A stretch of 64,000 nt of DNA, taken from NCBI GenBank assembly GCA_025786725.1, contig JAHLTZ010000016.1:1-64000 (forward strand), read 5' to 3'. The DNA comes from Syncephalis fuscata S228 (Eukaryota; Fungi; Zoopagomycota). Below the pieces are notes generated by a model, which ran no database searches, was not told the DNA's origin, and saw only the letters and a list, made by a program, of their open reading frames with translations. This document shows, piece by piece, positions 1,017 through 49,985 of the stretch (the first letter of the stretch is position 1; every line of letters begins with the position of its first letter). The position numbers and the translations under genes were made by a program.

Positions 1017-2358
1017 TTAGATTACCAATGCTAATGCCTTGAAAGTGTTGGTTATTTTATGTTTATAAGCAGATATAACACATATCACATGATTAATATA
1101 TAATTGGTTAATATACAACGCCACTTACAACCTATTAACACGAGTTATTAGACACACACAGTGCGTGTCATACAATTAATATATATTTGGTTAATTAAAA
1201 TTTTACTTACAGCCTATTATATAGGTCATTAGATGCACACAATGCATAGTATATGGTTAGTATATACCTAGCTAATATACAATACCACTTATGACCTATT
1301 AATACAAGTTATTAAACACACAATGTATATGGTATACACTCAATATACAAATATTTAATATTCAATGCCACTTACGACCTATTCATATGAGTTATTAGAC
1401 ACGCGATGTGTGTCATATGATTAACATATAGTTAGTTAAATTAATAAAAATCACTTACAAACTATTATATAGATTATTAGGCACACACGATGTGCGGTAT
1501 ATGATTAGTATGTGGTTAGCTAATATGCAATGCCACTTACGAGCTATTATATAGGTCATTAGACACACACAATGCGCGGTATATGATTAGTATCTAGTTA
1601 ACTACTATCCAATGTCACTTACGTCCTATCAACACAAGTTATCAAACACACAACATATATAATATATGCTTAGTATATAGTTAGTTGATATACAATATTA
1701 CTTACGACCTATTAATATGAGTTATTAGGCACACGGTACGTGTCATATGATTAATATATAGTTGGTTGATTAAAAAATTACTTACAAGCTATTATATAGG
1801 TCATTAGACACAAGCGATGCGAGGCATATGATTAGTATATAGTTGGCTGATATAAAATGCCACTTACTAGCTAGCAAAGCCAATTTAGCAGCATAAACAT
1901 TGTTTAGTTAACTAAAAACTAGTTAATGTTATTGCAATATACCTCCTATTAATATAGATTTGGTATATTAGCATTCTGAATGTGGCTTTTATTTATTGTT
2001 TTATGTTAAACGTACTCTTAGCTAATAATTCTATATTTATTTATTTTAATTAATGAGCAATGGTTAGCCAAAACATCAATAATCATGTATGCTCAAAACT
2101 TACGGGCTATTTACGTGTGTTATAGCATTCATTATGTGTATAACAACATATAGTGAGTACCAAAACAATGATCCATCATCACAACTTACCACCTAGTACC
2201 ATTGTTAGTTAAACATAATGTTAGTAAACATAACACTTGAATATTTATTGCGATTGCAACATACCACGACGGGCTAGAGTTGGATTAGCATCTACCATGG
2301 CTGTAGTGGCCACAAGAGCCATGATAATGGTGCAAACGACGGCAATAAAAAGCTTCAT
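1017..2358 (-). CDS. Secreted prepro-peptide encoded by a microexon array (locus 1), predicted MKLFIAVVCTIIMALVATTAMVDANPTLARR-GAPKRATCRPLCRRC(SLVI*)
   Basis: Exon 1 is 2358-2265 (31 codons + 1 nt; signal peptide, RR). It is followed by AG|exon|GT microexons at 2192-2190 gtg, 2106-2104 ccc, 2021-2016 ctaaga, 1945-1943 gag, 1870-1868 cta, 1788-1786 ctt, 1708-1706 gtc, 1625-1623 gac, 1543-1541 ctc, 1461-1459 ttt, 1378-1376 gtc, 1295-1293 gtc (AT donor), 1213-1211 gct, 1131-1129 gtt. Introns are 70-83 nt. The terminal exon and stop are uncertain. Confidence 0.8.
1090..1870 (-). repeat. Diverged tandem array, ~82-nt unit = one intron + one 3-nt exon
   Basis: On the + strand (c)acttac-NNN-ctat recurs every 80-83 nt, with shared internal motifs (atatgattagtata, ttattagacacac). 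Confidence 0.9.
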
Positions 2359-7050: not shown

Positions 7051-8385
7051 TTACAGTATATATAATAATATTGTAACGCGAATCAAGCAACTAACTAACG
7101 TATTACATTGACTTATTCTATCATATACAAGTCGTAGACGATCGTCTTTTGGCAGTGTATCATCAGATGATGTGGATTGATTTATCGCATCGACAAACGG
7201 ACAAACAGCAACCTTGACTGTTGCTTCAAACAGGCCCCGTACTAGGTCGCGTAGGCGGTGGCCTGTTTGTGCAAAATCAGGGAATGCATTGGCTTCGAGC
7301 AGCCATACATTGTGAGATTCATCGATAAGAAAATCAAATCCATAGAGTTCAAATGCATTTGGCATTGGCTGGAAGCCAATAGCATCCGATGATACTGCAG
7401 CAAAACATTCACCCAATACTGACGCACACTGGTTGAATATCTGCTCTAATGTTGTAGCTTTAAGACCATGGTTTGTTAGATTCCAAAAAGCGCGTACAGC
7501 TTGCGCTTCATCAAATGCCTCATTGTGCTGCTGAAGGCATGTATTTGTAAGATGTCCTTGCAGCGATTCTATACTAGTAATATCATAGTCAGTGCCGGCA
7601 AAAAGTGCCAGCATTTCGCGATATAAATAGACTTGCGTTCGTCCTACAGATAGTACATAAGCACGTAGATGGAATTTCCGTGAATCATTTGGTAAAAGCA
7701 ACGGTTGCGCAATATATCGTTGAATGACCCATTCTCTCAAGAGCCATGCACTGCCCTGCTCGCTATCCGCATCTTCGTTGGCATCTTCTGCTTCGCTATC
7801 GCTTTCTCCAAAAAGCTCCTCTATCATTGTTTCCATGCCTGATAACGAATCTAGTAAATAGATGCCTACACCGCGTCCAGTCATTGAAGGCTTCATGATA
7901 AAGCGTTCAAGCTGCTTGGGATCATTACATGACAGATTATTACGAAATCCACGCTCAACTTCCCAACACTCATTTAGTGCTTCATCAAGATAGTCAGGAT
8001 GATCCAGACGGAATATCCACGTCTCTGGCACATGCTGTTTTAGCAAGCTTTGGGGTCGCTTTGCGCAGTAATGCTGAAAGGCATTGGCCATTTGAATTTT
8101 ACGAATTAAAGCTTTTCGTATGCAGTAGGAATTAATTAAGCTGCGTTCAGGATGCTTACTGGCTATATCCCAGTCAATCGATTCGTATTCGCGCCACTGT
8201 AAAACGGGTACAGTATTGCTACAAACGTAAGCATCTTTATTACGAGGTGGCCACTCCGAAACAATAGTCAACGCGGGACATAATAGCGCTAATGTTTCTC
8301 GTACTAGTATATCCACATACGGATCATCAAGACGGACTACAGCCACCATAGACGAGTGAATATCGATACAGCTGTGGGTGGCCAT
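7051..8385 (-). CDS. Tubulin-tyrosine ligase family ATP-grasp protein (Pby1-like)
   Basis: INSYCIRKALIRK, IMKPSMTGRGVGI, VIQRYIAQPLLL, RKFHLRAYVL, HLTNTCLQ, FELYGFDFLID, LLEANAFPDF; first ATG at 8385. Confidence 0.9.
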   Translation of the reverse strand: MATHSCIDIHSSMVAVVRLDDPYVDILVRETLALLCPALTIVSEWPPRNKDAYVCSNTVPVLQWREYESIDWDIASKHPERSLINSYCIRKALIRKIQMANAFQHYCAKRPQSLLKQHVPETWIFRLDHPDYLDEALNECWEVERGFRNNLSCNDPKQLERFIMKPSMTGRGVGIYLLDSLSGMETMIEELFGESDSEAEDANEDADSEQGSAWLLREWVIQRYIAQPLLLPNDSRKFHLRAYVLSVGRTQVYLYREMLALFAGTDYDITSIESLQGHLTNTCLQQHNEAFDEAQAVRAFWNLTNHGLKATTLEQIFNQCASVLGECFAAVSSDAIGFQPMPNAFELYGFDFLIDESHNVWLLEANAFPDFAQTGHRLRDLVRGLFEATVKVAVCPFVDAINQSTSSDDTLPKDDRLRLVYDRISQCNTLVSCLIRVTILLYIL

Positions 8386-9970
8386 GATAAAAAAAACAAC
8401 TTCTACGAAGCTTACGAGAAATAAAAAGTAAAGAATATGCTGAAAAAAAAATGTGTAATGTAACAAATTTTCCTTCCACGCAATTTATTATTTCCTTATT
8501 TAGTAGTAATGTCGTGTATAACTAATAAAATAAAGTGAAGAAAATTCCGAGTTTTTTAAAAAAATAAAAAGTGAAGGCCAATATTTTATTATAAGATATA
8601 ACAATGTTACTACTCCACATACTCAATAAATTGTTAGTAAAGCTTAAGTATATTGATTACTAAACATAGTAGTTCAAATCAATTGCTAATATTATTCCAT
8701 GATTTACACCACATTATTAACACCCATGATCAACACGCGACTAAACACCCGGTCCTACCGACTTCTAACAACAGCGTCAATCAATTACTACTCTTATCAA
8801 CCATTCGAATCCTTTGTAAAAAACTTTCTAATTGTTATCAACCATTAAGAAAGCAACGAACAAACAATAAATTCAAGTCTTTCTTAGCTATTGCTAAAGG
8901 TCATTTGTTGTAAAATATCGCTACTATTTTGCTATCTCAATTTTAAATTCACTTCATTGCTAAGTTTTGGACCTTTTCGTGCCATCCCAACCTATTAGTA
9001 ATATTTAGGCTGGACTGGCACGTTTATTAGCTAGTTTTACACTAGCTATTCTATACTTTATTATATTTTTAATAAGGAATTAATCATCTTTTATTAAGGA
9101 CCTAAGGTAAGCATTTATAATACTAACAATCTTGTTTCATAGGTTATTAAGATGAGTGTAGTATTAGTTATCGATTTATTACTTTTCTTTCAATAAAATA
9201 GCAACAATAAAAAACAGCAACATTCTTTTTGAATTTAACATAGCATAGATATCTAAATTAAAATTTTTAAAAAATGTCTACTTGTTACGAAGATAATTAC
9301 GCGTTTTTTATTATACAAATACTTTATCGTAATTATATTAATTTAATATCCGCAAAATTCATATTTGTTACGCAATTTTATTAAATAACAGCAATATTAT
9401 TGATCTAAGATGGTTTAGAAAGTGTAATTATTTAGTATCTCCATCCTATATGGACTTGACAATAGCAAATATATTGTATACTTTGTTATGTCAAGTATTT
9501 CTTTATTTAAATATCAAATAAATATTACGCTTGTATTACAATACAACATAGTATATGTACATATAACATAAATACATGCCAGCCGTGCAACTAACAGACT
9601 ATATTATGCAATCACCATACTCATACCATTTACTCTATCTGCCATAGTAATACTGTTTTGCCTTTAATTACATTGCTACAAGACAATGGTAATATTATTT
9701 ATGTGTTATTAAAATTAAAATTATAAAATTATTTTACTTGATCCGTAGCTATTGCTATAAAAGCACTGATTATACATTAAATTTATTTTAAAATATAACA
9801 ATTGAAAATGCATGCATTTCGGTATTTTAACGTAAGCCTTTTAGCTATTTATGTTATAGTTTAGTGTATTGTCGAATAAAAACAAACATCAAATGACTAA
9901 TAAAGCACTAATATATAATCCACACAATCAATTAGCTAGTACATTTTGTTCTTGAAATTATCATAGCACT

Positions 9971-36373: not shown

Positions 36374-37470
36374 AGCTGTGTTTTAACAGAATATGCTATT
36401 TTCATTTATAATACCTTGAAATGACGATAAACATTAATTTACAAATTCAGACGTAAAACCATTGCGTCCATGTTATAAAGTATTCTAATAGCAATAATTT
36501 ACTTAATTAAACATTATTAAGATTGTGCATAACTTACGTATAATAAAGCAAACTGCATGATATTTTGCACAAGCATGCACATGACATACAGACAACTATT
36601 AGCGAAGTATACCGTAGTTGTGTTGCGGTATAGACCAATGGTTGCGATAATACGCTAATAAATGTGCAAAAATGGCCGTTTTTTTACCATTTATGGCTTG
36701 TGTAAACAAAATACAGCAAAATGATTGCTGGATTCGAGTTGTCCATGCTTAGTTATACACATTGGTATGTTTTATAGAACAATGATTTTTGCAAAAATGT
36801 TAGTCAAAAATGCAATTTACGTAATATTTGCTAACAAAAGCAATTAAAGTTATACGATTTTAAAGATTTTAATATTAAAAATGAAATTGGCATAAAGTAA
36901 ATTTAAAGCATTCACAACGCCAAAACAAGCATAATGGCAATTTAATATGCAGAAATATTGCTGTAAAGTGGCAATTTATGCTACTGATATACATATAACT
37001 TAGATTTTTGTTAGCAAATATTACGTAAATTGCATTTTTGACTAACATTTTTGCAAAAATCATTGTTTATAAAACATACCAATGTGTATAACTAAGCATG
37101 GACAACTCGAATCCAGCAATCATTTTGCTGTATTTTGTTTACACAAGCCATAAATGGTAAAAAAACGGCCATTTTTGCACATTTATTAGCGTATTATCGC
37201 AACCATTGGTCTATACCGCAACACAACTACGGTATACTTCGCTAATAGTTGTCTGCATGTCATGTGCATGCTTGTGCAAAATATCATGCAGTTTGCTTTA
37301 TTATACGTAAAGTTGTGCACAATCTTAATAATGCTTAATTAAGTAAATTATTGCTATTAGAATACTTTATAACATGGACGCAATGGTTTTACGTCTGAAT
37401 TTGTAAATAATGTTTATCGTCATTTCAAGGTATTATAAATGAAAATAACGTATTCTGTTAAAACACAGCT
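36374..37470. mobile_element. Foldback element: ~465-bp near-perfect inverted arms around a ~166-bp spacer; non-autonomous TIR element or local palindrome
   Basis: 36374-36839 is the reverse complement of 37006-37470; no ORF; no TSD identified. Confidence 0.6.
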
Positions 37471-38098
37471 ATTAGAATATAGCTATTACGTTTTACAATG
37501 ATCGCATTATTGTTATTCCAACACTGTATGTATGTTATTATGGCAGCGTAACTAATAAATATACTATGTGATTGGGTAACACGTTATATGTGAATAGGTG
37601 CAATATTAATACGCTAAACATTAACACTAAATACTAGTAATAAACATCTATAAATCATATAATCAACAGATATTTGTTAATTGTTAATAAATAATTATCA
37701 ACATAAGCCAGCAGCTCTGTGTTAAAAACAAACAAAACAATACAAAGCTCTTGCTTTATTACTAGCCATATTTACTAAAAATAATAATAACTTTACTCAA
37801 TATTAGTAAAGATTCTCAGTTTCTAGTTCCATTTGTAACTGCTTAGTGTCATGCAGCTTATTCACTTTACGATGGTTAAACTGTGGTAGTTAATAAACAA
37901 TAATAGCTAAATTTATTATCAAAACGATATCAACTAAGCAACATGCTGTATTCTGAGTGTTAACATAAGTGTTAGTAAGTATCAAAGACTAATGCTGTAG
38001 TATAACATCAAGATAAGGCGTGCTCAGTCGTCTAGCCCACAGCTTCTAAAATCAGAATTGTAACAGCATTTAGCATTATTGCCGCATTTTCACTCTCT

Positions 38099-38515
38099 TT
38101 ATCCGACAATGTTATGATTAGCGCTATTAACATAATTATTGTCGGCGCAGACGTTATTTGCGGTGGTATAGGCATTCACATCCGAGTTGGCAATGTGATC
38201 AGCCTCATTTTGATGACTATTGAACGCGCTAGTGACTGCATTCGCGTTAAGTGCATTGTTATTTGCATTGAAGTTGTTGTTGTTTGATGCAAACCATGGG
38301 GAGTAGCCGCAATTGCCATAGCCATAGTTACCATAGCCACCGTAGCAGCCATTGTAGCAATATGGACTCCATGGCGCATACGAGCCGGGATAGCCACCGA
38401 TGCCGAATGATCTACGCTCAAACAAAGCCATTGGCTGGGCATCCACATGCTCATGAATCAGCATAATAATAGCAACAACAGCAGCAGTTGAAATAGCCGA
38501 ACGAAAAGTAAGCAT
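38099..38515 (-). CDS. Secreted Gly/Tyr-rich plus Asn/Ala-rich 138-aa protein
   Basis: Hydrophobic signal ending VDA|QP, then RR, GGYPGSY..GCYGGYGNYGYGNCGY and an N-rich tail. Confidence 0.85.
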   Translation of the reverse strand: MLTFRSAISTAAVVAIIMLIHEHVDAQPMALFERRSFGIGGYPGSYAPWSPYCYNGCYGGYGNYGYGNCGYSPWFASNNNNFNANNNALNANAVTSAFNSHQNEADHIANSDVNAYTTANNVCADNNYVNSANHNIVG

Positions 38516-40707
38516 CTTGTAATTGGATAGTTGATTGATATCAATTGAATGTGTAGGTCAGTATCTATTGCGAATGTAACAGTTCTATAATGTAGCGAGT
38601 GGAGTCAAAGTAGGTAATCAAGCTTGAATGATTGTTGTGATGATGAACTAACTAGTCGATAGCAATATTTGTTGCACATTATATACTAGTGGATTAAATA
38701 GTGACATGATGATGTCAACCATGATAAATACTAGCTGTCATTAAGATTAAGAACTGACGCTGTTAATTATTGCATACTAAACAATGACATGGTGGTACTG
38801 AATTGTTTTGTACCATTAATAGATATGCGTAGACACTGACACTTTATTTCAGACGACTAAAAGCAATAGCCAAACGTAGTGAGGCATTTGTATGAATCAA
38901 GTCAAACAACAAAATGACCGCATATTTAAATGATAATCAGTCACATAGTTGTGCCGATGTCTGCTATTGGTACGATATTAGATATAAATAAAGCCTACAG
39001 CAAAAACTGATATTTGTATTATTTGGAAATTAGCCAAAATAAATAAAGAATAAGCCATATACTATTTCAGTAATATGTGTTGGATTAATACTCATTAGTA
39101 AATATTATTATCATAAGATAAATATTGATTTAGTGTACCATATACACCTATTCAAAAAATATATAATTTATTATAAATGCATAAATGCTTTTATAGGTAC
39201 TAGAGTACAAGGACCAAGTATAAATACATCAATTATAAGAGCGCCGATACTATTACAGTATAATGGTAGCCAACTGATTGCCATTGTTGCATCAGTGTGT
39301 ATTGTACACGAGATAAGTTGTGATAACAAATAAGCAAGTACGCACAGACAAAGGCACACGCATAAATGCGGCATTAACTACAAGCAGTAAGCATAATGGC
39401 TAGCCACTAGTTATATATATATATATTAATGAATTGAACCGCTATATCTATGACGATATGTACGATGATAGTGAATAAACAATCAAGTTACACTGGAGCA
39501 TTGATTATCTCCATGTCACTCAGTAAATAATACATAATATACACAGTTATAGTAGAAAGCAGACAGGAGTTGGTATAGACGATGGATAATATTGCTAAAA
39601 TGATAGTAAGTTATTTAATGCATCACTTATCCTGAATTGCAGACGTAAAAGCATGACCCGAATGCATAATGCATAATACAAATTTTAGACTGTAAACCAG
39701 TTATTTCTAATCAAGTTATTGTAATATGAGTCATCTACGCAACAATACAGCCTAGTTGGTATGCCGTGAGCTGCTGCTGTACGCTCAACTTCAAGCATAT
39801 CTGGCTGAGTCATTCTGATGGACATATCACAATGTCCTTACACCGAGTTGCATGTTATTTAGTCAGTTTAATTTACTTTGAGGCCAAGCAATAACGACAT
39901 CAACAGCCAAACATGATCTTCTATTGTCAAAATGCATATAATTAACAGGAAATAAATAATACAGGCAATTTATACTCAACAACACAAACTGAATTAACAT
40001 TTAGTAGCACTGTACTAGAAATAATCTGTTTATCCTTGTAGCCATGCCACAATGTCAAATCAAACGCATGTATGAACCAATCAGTATATTTCCATGGCTT
40101 AAAAGGTAGCAGATGGTTTATGCACGACAGCATATATACGTGGGGAGGTAAAGGCTCGATGCAGCAATGTTATTGCTGTATTGATGCTATTTACTGCTTA
40201 GGATGAATGTAAATATGGGAATTGAGGATGTTAGTGAAAGCGACAGCAAATGCACAACAATGCATCATCGCTGTTTCTTTAGAACCAATATGTTTAATCA
40301 ACGCTAAATAATCGAATGTTGTAACATTACAATATGAATTGATAGGTGCATTTCTACCAAATGAAAACCTGATAATGGCAGCGCCGCTTCATTTGTGTAA
40401 TTTCCAGAAGGCTGAAGCAAAGGCTTGGTTGCGTTATAGCGTATCATCGATATGCCGATATACGCATGATTCAAGCCAGCACATGGATATGCTTTATGAA
40501 TGCACACTGCACATCAATGATATAATCCATACAACACATTATACTGGTGTCTTTAATAGTCAGACTTAAATAGCACACAAATATACGCACCTAGCTAGTA
40601 GTATCATTATTACAATTTATTTTTTACTAAATACTTACTATCATCTACTTATCCTAAACACGCTCTATTGTCTATCCTACTTGATTTTTTAACAAATCAA
40701 TATTACC

Positions 40708-41623
40708 ATGAAGCTTTCTATTGCCAGCATCTGCGCCGTCCTCGTGGCTTTTGTGGCCAATATGGCTATGGTAAATGCTAAGCCAGTTCTAATTCGCCGT
40801 GGTACGTTGCAATTGCAATAATTAGTCATTTGATTAATTAAATACTGTTCGTATTATCGGATTGGTGTTATTAGGTCGTAAGTAATCCCATATATCGATT
40901 AGTCATGTATTACTTACACACCATTCCTTCTATGTGCTTAATAACCGCAATGTTAACAGCTCGTAAGTGGCATTGTATATTAAATAGCTATATACTAACC
41001 ATGTAACACCCAATGTGCGCACATTTGATAACTCGTATTGATAGAATGTAAGTAGCATGATATATTGATCAACTGTATACTAATTATATACCACCCGCCG
41101 TGTGTATTCAACAACTTGCATTACTAGTCAGTAGGTGGCATTGTATACTAACTAGTCATATACTAACTAAATGACATTCACTGTGTGGTTTGAATGATTT
41201 GTATTAATAGAAGGTAAGCTGTGTTGTACATAAAAAGCTATATACTAATTATATACCATTCACCGTGCGCGCTTAATAATTTGTATTATTAGCTAGTAAG
41301 CGCTATTGTACGTTTGCCAACTATGTGCTAACCATATAAAATTTACCGTGTGTGTTTAATAATTTGCATTACTAGCTAGTAAGCGTTATTGTATGTTTGT
41401 TAACTATGTGCTGACCATATGACATTCGCCGTGTGCGTTTAATAACATAAACCAATAGTTGGTAAGTGATATTGTATTTAATAAGCCATATGCTAAACGT
41501 ATATCATTCACTATGTGTGTCTAATAACTCTTATTTATAGGCTGTAGGTAGCTATGTATACCAAGTAGCTATGTACTAATCATACACCATGGACTGCGTA
41601 TGTAATAACTTGTGCTAATAGAA
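40708..41623 (+). CDS. Secreted prepro-peptide encoded by a microexon array (locus 2), predicted MKLSIASICAVLVAFVANMAMVNAKPVLIRR-GPQFKATIG*
   Basis: Exon 1 is 40708-40801. 3-nt exons: 40875-7 gtc, 40960-2 ctc, 41045-7 aat, 41128-30 tca, 41211-3 aag, 41293-5 cta, 41376-8 cta, 41459-61 ttg, 41541-3 gct, 41622-4 aag. All are flanked by AG and GT; introns are 73-82 nt; the last junction creates TAA. Confidence 0.85.
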
Positions 41624-42639
41624 GGTAAGTAGAAGCACGTACTACCAACTTAATACCAACTTTATGATATACGCTGTATTTATTTATAATCACAAAATAA
41701 CCAATAATTTCAAACCATAGACATTGGTAGTTTAATTGAACTGTTGGTTCAACATACTTTAGGTATATATTCGGCAAAAAAGGCCACTTGACAGCTGCTA
41801 TTTAGCCCGTTTATACATCAAGTTGCAACCAATGCCCCGGTTTACCTGCCTTTTAGTCGATGGCATCATTATATTACCAACAAACTTAAAATTAGTCGTG
41901 TCTACGCAACTATGCAAGATTATAGTAATAAACTAGCAGTTCCATTTTAACTAGCTTCAATCGTGTCGTTATAATTATACTTATGTTTCATTTGTATCCA
42001 AAACTTGGCAAACATTAGCCAAATATACATATTAACAAAGGATTATGCAACTATTCTGTGCTAATGACTAGCCTGGCCGATGAATCAACCAAGCAATTAA
42101 TGTCGAAGCATATGTTGGTGATGGATATCAGTTGTTGTCATCAGCTTTATTAACTTTGCTGATCTTGATATCGTTTTACGATGAATTTAAAAAATAATAA
42201 TGTGCAGCAAAAAAAACAATTTAAGTAAAAGAGGAAAGCATAAAAGACAATATGAAAAACCGAAAATATGAAATGTAAATGTAGAAAAGTGATGAGCTAT
42301 TATTAATGCTATGCGGTCTTTTAATAACCAACCTGATTTAAACTGTATAGCTTTATCAGATGATTACTTATGGTATATGTAGACTGATAATCATAAATAG
42401 CAGCAGTAACACTAACAGTGTTGTTTGTTTACTTAAACATGAGCTTTAACGCTTTATCTTCTTAGCGTAGTATTGTAATGCTTCTTGCCATTATGTTGAA
42501 CTTGATTGCCACATCTTTACGTTGGCTGATTTAGAAAATAGTGATTTAGTTGATTATCTTGATTGTATTATGGCTATTGCATTACCCTTAAACATTATGG
42601 TATAATTTGGTGTTTAATGGCTATATTTAATAATATTTA

Positions 42640-46202: not shown

Positions 46203-47865
46203 ATGGCACGAGGTGGTCATCGTGGTGGTCGGGGCGGTTTTGGTGGCGACAATTCGGTTCAACGTGGCCGTGGTGGTAGAGGACGTGGCGGCGGAGGACG
46301 AGGAATGCCAATACAGCAAGAAAAATCGACGTTAGATAGACCAGAGCTACAGCATGGACAATTACCAGCCAATAAGCCAGATACATCAGCGGCCATTAAA
46401 TCCAACGAGTTCTCGCAAAGCAACTCTTCCAAACGAGCACCAGTAGCAAGACCCGATACAGGCGTGGCTAGTGGGGTCAATGCAGCAATAAAGCCACTAA
46501 ACGAGACGAAAAAGAAGAAGAATGCAAAGAAAGCAAAAAAGAAGGCGTTGGCAGAAGCTACAAGTGCACCAGCGCCTAAAGTAAGCAAAAAAACATACAA
46601 AGGAAAGAACAAGGCTACGCCAGAAGAAGAGGCAGCGCAGCGTCGACGCGAAGAAAAGCGCGAAAGAGAGCGTGAACGGCGTCGCCAACGTGCGGCACGT
46701 CGTGCTAAAGAACGACAAGAAACAGAAGCAGCAGAAATGGCACGACGAACTAAAGTGGTAGTTCGACGGTTACCACCCACACTACCTGAATCTGTATTTT
46801 ACGAGGCAGCAGGCAATTGGCTATTAGATGATAAGATAGAATGGAAAATGTATTGTCCTGGCAAGGTGGCTAGCAGGTAAGTATTAAAGGAATATGATTA
46901 AATGGGCTAGCTTTCTAACGATATATTGAATTCTGTCAGCCGGGCCCAAGAAAACCGATATTCGCGAGCGTATATTCGTTTTCATACAATAGAACAAATG
47001 GTGGCTTTTCATCGAGGATTTGATGGACATTTATTTATTGATTCTAAAGGTAATATATCATTTGCATCATTTATCGGTAGCTAATTTTTCATCAATGTTA
47101 TTAGGCGAGGAAAGCTTTGCTGTTGTAGAGTATGCTCCATATCAGAAAATACCCAAAGAACGTAGCAAGGTAGATCATCACCAAGGTACAATTAATAAAG
47201 GTAAATAATACATGTGTTATATCACTAATCGTTAATGTATTTGCAATAGATCCTGATTATATGGCATTTCTCAAAAGATTAGAGGAGATTAAAGAAAATG
47301 GTAATGTAGAAAGTATTATGGACACACAACCAGAGGAAGAAGAGAAATGTAAGTTAATTATCTAATAACCAAATACATTTAATAATAATTAAATGGTGCC
47401 ACTGTAGCTTTATTGCCCACAGAAGGTAAAGATACACCACTACTCGAACATCTGCGTGAACAGAAAGCACTTATGGAAGCACGCAAACGAGAACGACGGG
47501 CACGGATTTCTAGTGCAAAGGCGGCATCTAGAGCTGAGAAAGCGGCGCGCGCAAAACAGCAAGCAAGTGCAAAAAAAGCTGCTTCTGGTAAAGCTCGACC
47601 TGAATCCGGTTCACGTCCTCCTAAGCCAGTCAAAATAGTTAAACGACCACCTGCTACCGCCGCAGCAGCGCCCAAAATTTTACTGAAACGGCCCACTGCA
47701 ACCAGCGAAGATATTACAAACGATCATAAAGATGAAGGTGCACCTAAAGTAGCAAAAGAGGGAACATCACGTTCGATAAGTCTGGCTTTAAATGCTGCGC
47801 TACAAGGTGGTAGCCGAAGTAAAGGCAGCGGTAAGAAGAAAGCTAATTCGCCTGAACAAAAATAA
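46203..47865 (+). CDS. UPF3: Nonsense-mediated decay factor Upf3/Smg4
   Basis: TKVVVRRLPPTL, YSRAYIRF, FDGHLFIDSK, AVVEYAPYQKIPK, GTINK|DPDYMAFL, TPLLEHLR. Confidence 0.92.
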
Positions 47866-49069
47866 TAACAACAACAATACTGGCGATTACTTTTTACTTT
47901 ATTCTATACTATGCGCTATGTTTGTTTTGTATTTAATTAAATAATTAATATAAAAGACATTGTTCATTTTTTTTGCAATTATGGCCTATTGTTAATAAAT
48001 AATAATAAATTGACTCATTATGTCATTCACCACTTAGTGCCATGTTCAATTGCGTAAATATTATTAAATATAGCCATTAAACACCAAATATACCATAATG
48101 TTTAAGGGTAATGCAATAGCCATAATACAATCAAGATAATCAACTAAATCACTATTTTCTAAATCAGCCAACGTAAAGATGTGGCAATCAAGTTCAACAT
48201 AATGGCAAGAAGCATTACAATACTACGCTAAGAAGATAAAGCGTTAAAGCTCATGTTTAAGTAAACAAACAACACTGTTAGTGTTACTGCTGCTATTTAT
48301 GATTATCAGTCTACATATACCATAAGTAATCATCTGATAAAGCTATACAGTTTAAATCAGGTTGGTTATTAAAAGACCGCATAGCATTAATAATAGCTCA
48401 TCACTTTTCTACATTTACATTTCATATTTTCGGTTTTTCATATTGTCTTTTATGCTTTCCTCTTTTACTTAAATTGTTTTTTTTGCTGCACATTATTATT
48501 TTTTAAATTCATCGTAAAACGATATTAAGATCAGCAAAGTTAATAAAGCTGATGACAACAACTGATATCCATCACCAACATATGCTTCGACATTAATTGC
48601 TTGGTTGATTCATCGGCCAGGCTAGTCATTAGCACAGAATAGTTGCATAATCCTTTGTTAATATGTATATTTGGCTAATGTTTGCCAAGTTTTGGATACA
48701 AATGAAACATAAGTATAATTATAACGACACGATTGAAGCTAGTTAAAATGGAACTGCTAGTTTATTACTATAATCTTGCATAGTTGCGTAGACACGACTA
48801 ATTTTAAGTTTGTTGGTAATATAATGATGCCATCGACTAAAAGGCAGGTAAACCGGGGCATTGGTTGCAACTTGATGTATAAACGGGCTAAATAGCAGCT
48901 GTCAAGTGGCCTTTTTTGCCGAATATATACCTAAAGTATGTTGAACCAACAGTTCAATTAAACTACCAATGTCTATGGTTTGAAATTATTGGTTATTTTG
49001 TGATTATAAATAAATACAGCGTATATCATAAAGTTGGTATTAAGTTGGTAGTACGTGCTTCTACTTACC

Positions 49070-49985
49070 TTCTATTAGCACAAGTTATTACATACGCAGT
49101 CCATGGTGTATGATTAGTACATAGCTACTTGGTATACATAGCTACCTACAGCCTATAAATAAGAGTTATTAGACACACATAGTGAATGATATACGTTTAG
49201 CATATGGCTTATTAAATACAATATCACTTACCAACTATTGGTTTATGTTATTAAACGCACACGGCGAATGTCATATGGTCAGCACATAGTTAACAAACAT
49301 ACAATAACGCTTACTAGCTAGTAATGCAAATTATTAAACACACACGGTAAATTTTATATGGTTAGCACATAGTTGGCAAACGTACAATAGCGCTTACTAG
49401 CTAATAATACAAATTATTAAGCGCGCACGGTGAATGGTATATAATTAGTATATAGTTTTTTATGTACAACACAGCTTACCTTCTATTAATACAAATCATT
49501 CAAACCACACAGTGAATGTCATTTAGTTAGTATATGACTAGTTAGTATACAATGCCACCTACTGACTAGTAATGCAAGTTGTTGAATACACACGGCGGGT
49601 GGTATATAATTAGTATACAGTTGATCAATATATCATGCTACTTACATTCTACCAATACGAGTTATCAAATGTGCGCACATTGGGTGTTACATGGTTAGTA
49701 TATAGCTATTTAATATACAATGCCACTTACGAGCTGTTAACATTGCGGTTATTAAGCACATAGAAGGAATGGTGTGTAAGTAATACATGACTAATCGATA
49801 TATGGGATTACTTACGACCTAATAACACCAATCCGATAATACGAACAGTATTTAATTAATCAAATGACTAATTATTGCAATTGCAACGTACCACGGCGAA
49901 TTAGAACTGGCTTAGCATTTACCATAGCCATATTGGCCACAAAAGCCACGAGGACGGCGCAGATGCTGGCAATAGAAAGCTTCAT
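49070..49985 (-). CDS. Microexon prepro-peptide gene, locus 3 (duplicate of locus 2, same predicted GPQFKATIG peptide)
   Basis: Exon 1 is 49985-49892 and the last microexon 49071-49069; the differences I saw from locus 2 are intronic SNPs. Confidence 0.85.

Follow-up and report, generated by a model that had tools for sequence, protein, structure and literature searches.

We describe a gene of the fungus Syncephalis fuscata S228 (Zoopagomycota) in which a predicted secreted peptide appears to be encoded by a conventional first exon followed by ten consecutive exons of three nucleotides (nt) each. The gene starts at position 40708 of a 64,000-nt stretch of DNA, hereafter the window, comprising positions 1 to 64,000 of contig JAHLTZ010000016.1 (assembly GCA_025786725.1). 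We consider it probable that this locus is a real, spliced, protein-coding member of a multigene family; the anatomy of the gene, its membership of the family and the selection acting across the family were computed, and from these we infer that it is spliced. Exon-1 matches across the genome place it in a lineage-specific family of about 300 genes for small, putatively secreted prepropeptides.

Anatomy of the gene

The coding part of exon 1 (40708–40801, forward strand, 94 nt) begins with an ATG at 40708 and encodes a predicted hydrophobic signal peptide, whose hydrophobic N-terminus can be read straight from the sequence, and then a short pro-region ending in Arg-Arg and the first base of a further codon. 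Its 3′ end reads ...CGC CGT G, which closes ...Ile-Arg-Arg with the Arg pair plus a single G (phase 1), and the donor GTACGT follows directly. Intron 1 (40802–40874, 73 nt, GTACGT...TTAG) is of a sequence type unlike that of the introns beyond it. Downstream lie the ten microexons, all on the forward strand: GTC (40875–40877), CTC (40960–40962), AAT (41045–41047), TCA (41128–41130), AAG (41211–41213), CTA (41293–41295), CTA (41376–41378), TTG (41459–41461), GCT (41541–41543) and AAG (41622–41624). Every one of the ten has AG just before it and, just after it, either GTAAG or, at the fourth and ninth, GTAGG; three nucleotides always separate AG from GT, all ten microexons are phase 1-1, and the period is 82–83 nt. 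Introns 2–10 (40878–41621) are nine diverged tandem copies, 78–82 nt in length, of a single unit of approximately 80 nt with GTAAGT, CTAAY and TAG signals, and are around 70–75% identical to the units of other arrays in the family. The lengths of introns 1–10 in order are 73, 82, 82, 80, 80, 79, 80, 80, 79 and 78 nt.

When joined in phase, exon 1 and the microexons read GGT CCT CAA TTC AAA GCT ACT ATT GGC TAA, that is GPQFKATIG and a stop. This is the sole stop in the joined frame and is created at the last junction (GCT/AAG), where the T of microexon 9 starts the stop codon and microexon 10 gives the following AA. An earlier note on this DNA had described the 94-nt exon 1 with its Arg-Arg-G end, the ten canonical AG/GT-bordered exons, the nonapeptide and the single stop at the final junction, and all of these can be read directly at the positions given above. 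Beyond the array, the last intron (41625–41720) is 96 nt long if the first usable AG (41719–41720) is the acceptor, there being no other AG past its first 12 nt. The last exon (41721–42000, forward strand) starts ACATTGG... and is a conserved 3′ untranslated region (UTR), homologous to the 3′UTRs of both array-bearing and intronless paralogues. With the stop completed inside the array, the choice of final acceptor would matter to the 3′UTR only.

The motif formed by these junctions, AGNNNGTARG, occurs 42 times in the window as compared with an expectation of 9.6±3.1, a count reached by none of 100 shuffles. Three arrays hold 31 of the 42 motifs, namely the studied locus, an inverted twin copy of it (motifs at 49064–49820) and a diverged paralogue that we call locus 1 (motifs at 1124–2194).

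We propose that exon 1 would give a signal peptide, a short pro-region ending in an Arg-Arg processing site of Kex2 type and one base of the mature region, with the mature peptide then being encoded three bases at a time by the ten microexons. Each microexon would be recognized by the AG of a canonical 3′ splice site before it and by a strong GTAAGT-like 5′ splice site after it, and the intervening introns of approximately 80 nt would be removed through the organism's normal signals (GTAAGT, CTAAY and YAG), which are also those of the ordinary introns, 49–61 nt long, of a neighbouring UPF3-like gene. Since every microexon is phase 1-1, removal of each short intron by ordinary intron-defined splicing would join the triplets in frame. 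The predicted product is a precursor of 40 amino acids (aa), from which cleavage of the signal peptide and after the Arg-Arg pair would release a putative 9-aa secreted peptide, GPQFKATIG, as placed by the Arg-Arg site. Such a product would be a likely effector or toxin-like peptide of this mycoparasite.

A family of prepropeptide genes

The family, which we define here as the S. fuscata MKLSIAVVC... prepropeptide family, was delimited in several ways. A motif for the start of exon 1 gave 298 matches in the 29.4 Mb genome compared with six for a control pattern, and a protein query of the genome returned 340 candidate family loci. The approximately 150 nt upstream of the studied gene, together with its exon 1, matched at least 40 scored loci, of 277 candidates, at 75–83% identity. 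Family exon 1 encodes MKLSI..., a hydrophobic core and then ...VDAKP...RR, a pattern which the studied locus fits. The upstream region of the studied gene (putative promoter and 5′UTR, 40560–40707, forward strand) is conserved and common to the family, with 75–80% identity to at least 40 further loci and with all 28 compared loci covering it from about 40560 onward. Seventy loci were fetched, representing 62 unique loci of which 47 carry arrays, 11 are intronless and four are other or broken. Five of the 62 loci are clearly broken: exon 1 is frameshifted in L043, L065 and L068, L030 lacks the ATG, and L037 has a donor mutation. The studied locus has a series of triplets that is unique among the 62 loci.

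Relatives in the databases are confined to the same lineage as far as they were traced: all 17 start with an MKLSI-like sequence, and the seven whose source was looked up are all hypothetical proteins of S. fuscata. Two of the deposited proteins, KAI9599469.1 and KAI9595475.1, are identical to open reading frames (ORFs) read from the genome. A Pfam search with intronless members gave nothing credible, a metagenome scan with exon 1 gave no matches, a search for encoding contigs found nothing, and a full-text literature search turned up no account of 3-nt exons in tandem arrays or of the S. fuscata family. The deposited models at two array loci, L069 (KAI9595475.1) and L016 (KAI9594927.1), keep exon 1 and then continue with residues unrelated to the joined peptides right after the Arg-Arg pair, indicating that public annotation has missed the arrays. 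RNA data for S. fuscata are publicly available, a transcriptome having been screened for viruses (PMC7482067), and the existence of deposited gene models likewise implies RNA or annotation data.

Exon 1 is 94, 97 or 115 nt long in this family and ends in phase 1 in every intact member, and the number of microexons per array ranges from 5 to more than 38. The earlier note was right that paralogues differ in both exon number and exon content, while the separate gene types that it had proposed resolve instead into approximately 300 genes of one family. The 39 non-redundant arrays comprise 752 microexons, of which 728 are of 3 nt, 23 of 6 nt and one of 9 nt. For the 6-nt exons, the acceptor lies 3 nt further upstream and the unit length is unchanged (77+6 versus 80+3 nt); exons that depart from 3 nt thus almost always preserve the frame, in line with a coding role. 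GCAAGT donors were found 11 times in the first 36 non-redundant arrays, within introns of double length. Across arrays, 515 intron units align to one consensus (GTAAGT, CTAAY box, TAG), and their lengths peak sharply at 78–80 nt.

Complete arrays close with an intron of about 70 nt followed by a last exon whose first two bases precede TAA, and the TAA-TCGATGG-like context of this exon is also found at the end of the intronless ORFs. The joined frame therefore takes one base from exon 1, 3n from the array and two from the last exon, and closes at a stop that is conserved in the family. At the studied locus, comparison with complete arrays identifies a remnant of this canonical acceptor and stop (AG/NN TAA C...) at 41694–41702, forward strand, in which AG has mutated to AA (41694–41695); a family-type last exon (AG/NN TAA TCGATGG-like) is thus lacking and the stop lies within the array. 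In L039, too, the last microexon completes the stop.

Coding signal in the joined microexons

Across the 39 non-redundant arrays, the joined microexons contain three in-frame stops in 777 codons, and two of the three are terminal codons (those of the studied locus and L039). Shuffling of exon order within each array gave 29.6±4.1 stops, the lowest count among 5000 shuffles being 15, and 64 stops are present in frame +2 of the joined arrays. A second signal is provided by cysteine, for which 73 codons were observed in the 39 arrays as compared with 41.4±4.6 under shuffling; six Cys residues each are encoded by the complete arrays L034, L044, L050 and L070 and likewise by several intronless paralogues. 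Finally, the base composition by codon position of the joined codons approximates that of the mature regions of intronless paralogues and is unlike that of intron interiors, with third-position T at 0.45 versus 0.42 and third-position G at 0.12 versus 0.14 in joined codons and intronless paralogues, respectively. On these sequence statistics, we conclude that coding selection acts on the 3-nt exons, once joined, throughout the family.

Evolution of the arrays

Divergence was examined in 12 aligned pairs of paralogues, with features labelled in just one of the two sequences. Mismatches amounted to 2.1% for donors, 1.8% for acceptors, 9.9% for intron interiors, 4.9% for exon 1 and 35% for microexons, indicating that the splice sites are protected and the triplets hypervariable. 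The claim of the earlier note that intron interiors have diverged with the splice sites being kept is therefore upheld, the splice sites being conserved about five times better, and can be extended in that the microexons diverge even faster than the introns. The CTAAY branch-point box, at 9.0% versus 9.9%, is no better conserved in these pairwise comparisons than the intron interior, yet in the alignment of 515 units its columns rank with the best conserved.

Architecture has changed repeatedly during the evolution of this family. In a tree of promoter and exon 1 sequences, intronless members are scattered among the array genes, and the well-supported branches force at least five changes of architecture. 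The sister loci L040 (G000:C13:178413, 14 microexons) and L041 (G000:C13:198501, intronless) are 20 kb apart and differ by about 2.5% in promoter and exon 1. Their mature parts are colinear: a stretch of 12 identical nucleotides lies equally far from exon 1 in both, and a common 7-mer precedes the stop. In a longest-common-substring comparison of intronless genes with joined arrays over the whole sample, matches of 7–12 were obtained as compared with a control mean of 9 and maximum of 13, and so were not above shuffles; only the in-register match of L040 and L041 is informative. For this pair, the colinearity is most simply read as suggesting that all introns were lost in one step by way of a cDNA intermediate. 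If so, L041 would be a genomic record of an array having been spliced as predicted.

Two loci, L045 (G000:C19) and L048 (G000:C24:517439), contain a higher-order repeat of three live units and one dead unit (AG/TAG/GTGACA) and encode a repeating Trp-rich motif (Trp/Leu/Lys/Thr). This repeat structure points to recent block duplication inside arrays, such that arrays also grow by tandem duplication of several units at once.

An element of about 450 nt, which is non-coding, was observed at the same position of the array intron unit in L004, L031, L040, L043, L054, L058 and L059. There are two copies in L043, and the copy in L058 sits about 780–1220 nt after the ATG; no ORF of at least 90 aa was found at the two element-bearing loci that were checked, L058 and L059. 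Arrays and ORFs continue past the insert, which is a further sign that the joined triplets are coding, an example being L058, whose 33 exons end at the canonical stop. The insert is possibly a small mobile element with the array intron as its target. A different form of product was seen in the intronless L033 (G000:C1:523550), which encodes a 111-aa product with several Lys-Arg or Arg-Arg sites and a repeated SALKH-like motif and looks like a multi-peptide precursor.

Alternative explanations

A number of considerations weigh against our interpretation of the studied locus. The last acceptor that is canonical for the family has been lost, and the product would be very short and has no Cys. The only close relative is a 99.9% identical twin (48973–49985, reverse strand), a copy of the entire gene with the same ten triplets on the opposite arm of a palindrome, so that the studied locus shows no sign of constraint of its own. 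Just two positions distinguish the copies (the equivalents of 41041, A/G, and 41237, G/A), both outside the splice dinucleotides and the microexons, and the twin thus provides no independent evidence. For the family as a whole, the low divergence of donors and acceptors is partly built in, as one sequence or both in a pair had to show good sites for the parser, and gene conversion among introns may inflate the contrast between microexons and introns; the sample read here also covers only 62 of the approximately 300 family loci. Finally, a stop at the terminal position only is found in 4.9% of random orders of the ten triplets of the studied locus. With a chance level of about 5%, the studied locus is weak evidence by itself and the strength of the case comes from the family; this is why our confidence remains at the level of the probable, with most of the remaining weight given to a recently inactivated copy.

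Such a decaying or silent copy, accompanied by its palindromic twin, would belong to a genuine microexon family and be no longer expressed or processed correctly. We regard this as unlikely, although it survives better than any other alternative. The loss of the canonical last acceptor would be explained in this way, as would the short array and the Cys-free peptide, and five members among the 62 loci are clearly broken, as listed above. The studied copy, however, has an intact exon 1, ten intact microexons, strong splice sites and a conserved promoter region, and its in-array stop closes the ORF in the same manner as in L039. Moreover, locus 1 carries the same AG-to-AA loss at the canonical last acceptor, so use of a downstream acceptor may be normal in this subfamily.

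A second alternative, which we judge to be improbable, is that the whole array is removed, either in one step or stepwise by recursive splicing, with the mRNA consisting of exon 1 and the last exon and the microexons being a by-product of intron duplication. Exons of 3 nt are hard for the spliceosome to keep, every skipped form would remain in frame, and a direct junction of exon 1 with 41721 would leave the frame open for 23 codons more. Removal of the array cannot, however, account for why in-frame stops are absent family-wide, why Cys is enriched or why the joined triplets carry a codon-position signature. The frame of the last exon is also not conserved among paralogues, and in intronless members the corresponding sequence lies downstream of the stop. 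That the array is a non-genic minisatellite with accidental AG and GT dinucleotides is hardly credible, since, although Tandem Repeats Finder picks up the 83-nt period and reports a plain tandem repeat, arrays always lie between a conserved promoter with a phase-1 signal-peptide exon and a conserved 3′UTR, their splice sites are five times as well conserved as the interior of the repeat, and an ORF is kept through the variable triplets.

Comparison with known systems

The nearest known kind of gene is represented by the micro-exon genes (MEGs) of Schistosoma and other flatworms, a secreted multigene family with a signal peptide in exon 1, symmetric exons of 3–81 bp, the skipping of which keeps the frame, and a fast-evolving mature part (10.1101/2023.06.21.545858; PMC4350168). 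The S. fuscata family resembles MEGs in its short symmetric in-frame exons and its fast-evolving mature part, and its exon 1 encodes a hydrophobic N-terminus that is a putative signal peptide. It differs in being fungal, with no sequence similarity found in the Pfam search of intronless members, and in having exons that are almost all exactly 3 nt and occur in runs of up to at least 38. Furthermore, its introns are tandem copies of about 80 nt whereas those of MEGs are long, unrelated and up to 5 kb, its microexons would encode a short mature peptide only, and intronless sister genes exist.

Conotoxins and defensin-like peptides combine a conserved signal and pro-region with a hypervariable, Cys-rich mature peptide, and are encoded by conventional exons. 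The S. fuscata family is similar to these prepropeptides in its divergence (4.9% in the signal and pro-region versus 35% in the mature part), its dibasic site and its many six-Cys members, and differs in that the hypervariable part is split into exons of the size of a single codon. With respect to splicing, ratchet points in the long introns of Drosophila and vertebrates are zero-length exons that serve to remove one long intron. These have a 5′ splice site almost directly after a 3′ splice site, as in our arrays, and the 5′ site has to be used later than the upstream splice or independently of it; they show that the spliceosome handles such juxtaposition. The arrays would work like recursive splicing repeated many times with a remainder of 3 nt. 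In the S. fuscata family, however, AG never abuts GT, the introns are short, and three coding nucleotides would be retained at each step.

Isolated 3-nt microexons with canonical AG/GT borders are present in the animal genes hth, MAP4K5 and RPS24 (PMC7392893, PMC8632122, PMC12207440). Those are single exons in large genes, in contrast to the tandem arrays of S. fuscata, which would make a whole mature peptide. The introner-like elements of fungi are spliceosomal introns that occur in very many near-identical copies per genome (PMC3609843, PMC4457414), and the S. fuscata introns resemble them in copy number only. Elements of that kind sit one by one in genes unrelated to each other, exceed regular introns in length and are predicted to fold stably. 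For two of the S. fuscata intron units, the 78 best matches, only the best candidates being scored, were clustered and, where this could be checked, lay downstream of family exon-1 sites. Fold z-scores of ten introns ranged from -1.5 to +1.6, indicating no stable structure relative to shuffles, unlike in introner-like elements.

Other features of the window

Locus 1 (1040–2358, reverse strand) has 11–13 microexons, including one 6-nt exon (CTAAGA) and one dead unit in which the donor has changed from GT to AT, and its joined peptide contains Cys residues. The earlier note had aligned the peptide of the studied locus to that of locus 1 without gaps; this alignment stands if a locus 1 exon with a weak donor (GAG/GTATAT) is counted, in which case exons 5–7 read xAG CTA CTx in both loci, and fails otherwise.

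The palindrome containing the studied gene and its twin is giant and near-perfect, with arms at approximately 36682–42607 and from 48086 to at least 54000, each of at least 5.9 kb, and a 5.5-kb spacer. Within the arm segment 39165–42607 there are 12 differences, eight of which are clustered at the outer end (39168–39182). The UPF3/Smg4-like gene (Pfam PF03467) lies in the spacer at 46203–47500, forward strand. An ORF of the tubulin-tyrosine-ligase family is located at 7054–8466, reverse strand (PF03133, E value 2e-49).

Biological significance

Here we have characterized a family of fungal genes whose array-bearing members would, if transcripts confirm the splicing predicted here, represent the most extreme exon fragmentation known to us, with mature peptides made from up to about 40 consecutive 3-nt exons. 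The family of approximately 300 genes would take up roughly 1% of this fungal genome, and a normal spliceosome would be able to process long runs of 3-nt exons faithfully. The pairing of array genes with intronless sisters provides a natural system in which to study how introns are gained and lost and how conversion by way of cDNA proceeds. Such genes are invisible to standard annotation and to read aligners, and similar families may hide in other genomes.

We tentatively suggest, as a possibility that we would not yet favour, that the one-codon-per-exon architecture is a device for diversifying peptides. Because the exons are 3 nt in phase 1-1 and the introns are copies of one unit, exon skipping, unequal crossover and the duplication or loss of units would change whole residues and never the frame. 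One gene could then give rise to a set of peptides by alternative splicing, and codons could be added, removed and shuffled singly over evolutionary time, which would account for the microexons diverging 3.5 times faster than the surrounding introns. Under such a scheme, the intronless paralogues would be cDNA-derived, ‘frozen’ products of the arrays. Finally, if our interpretation of the family is correct, this mycoparasite would possess a large hidden secretome of Cys-rich peptides that are candidate effectors or antifungal peptides.

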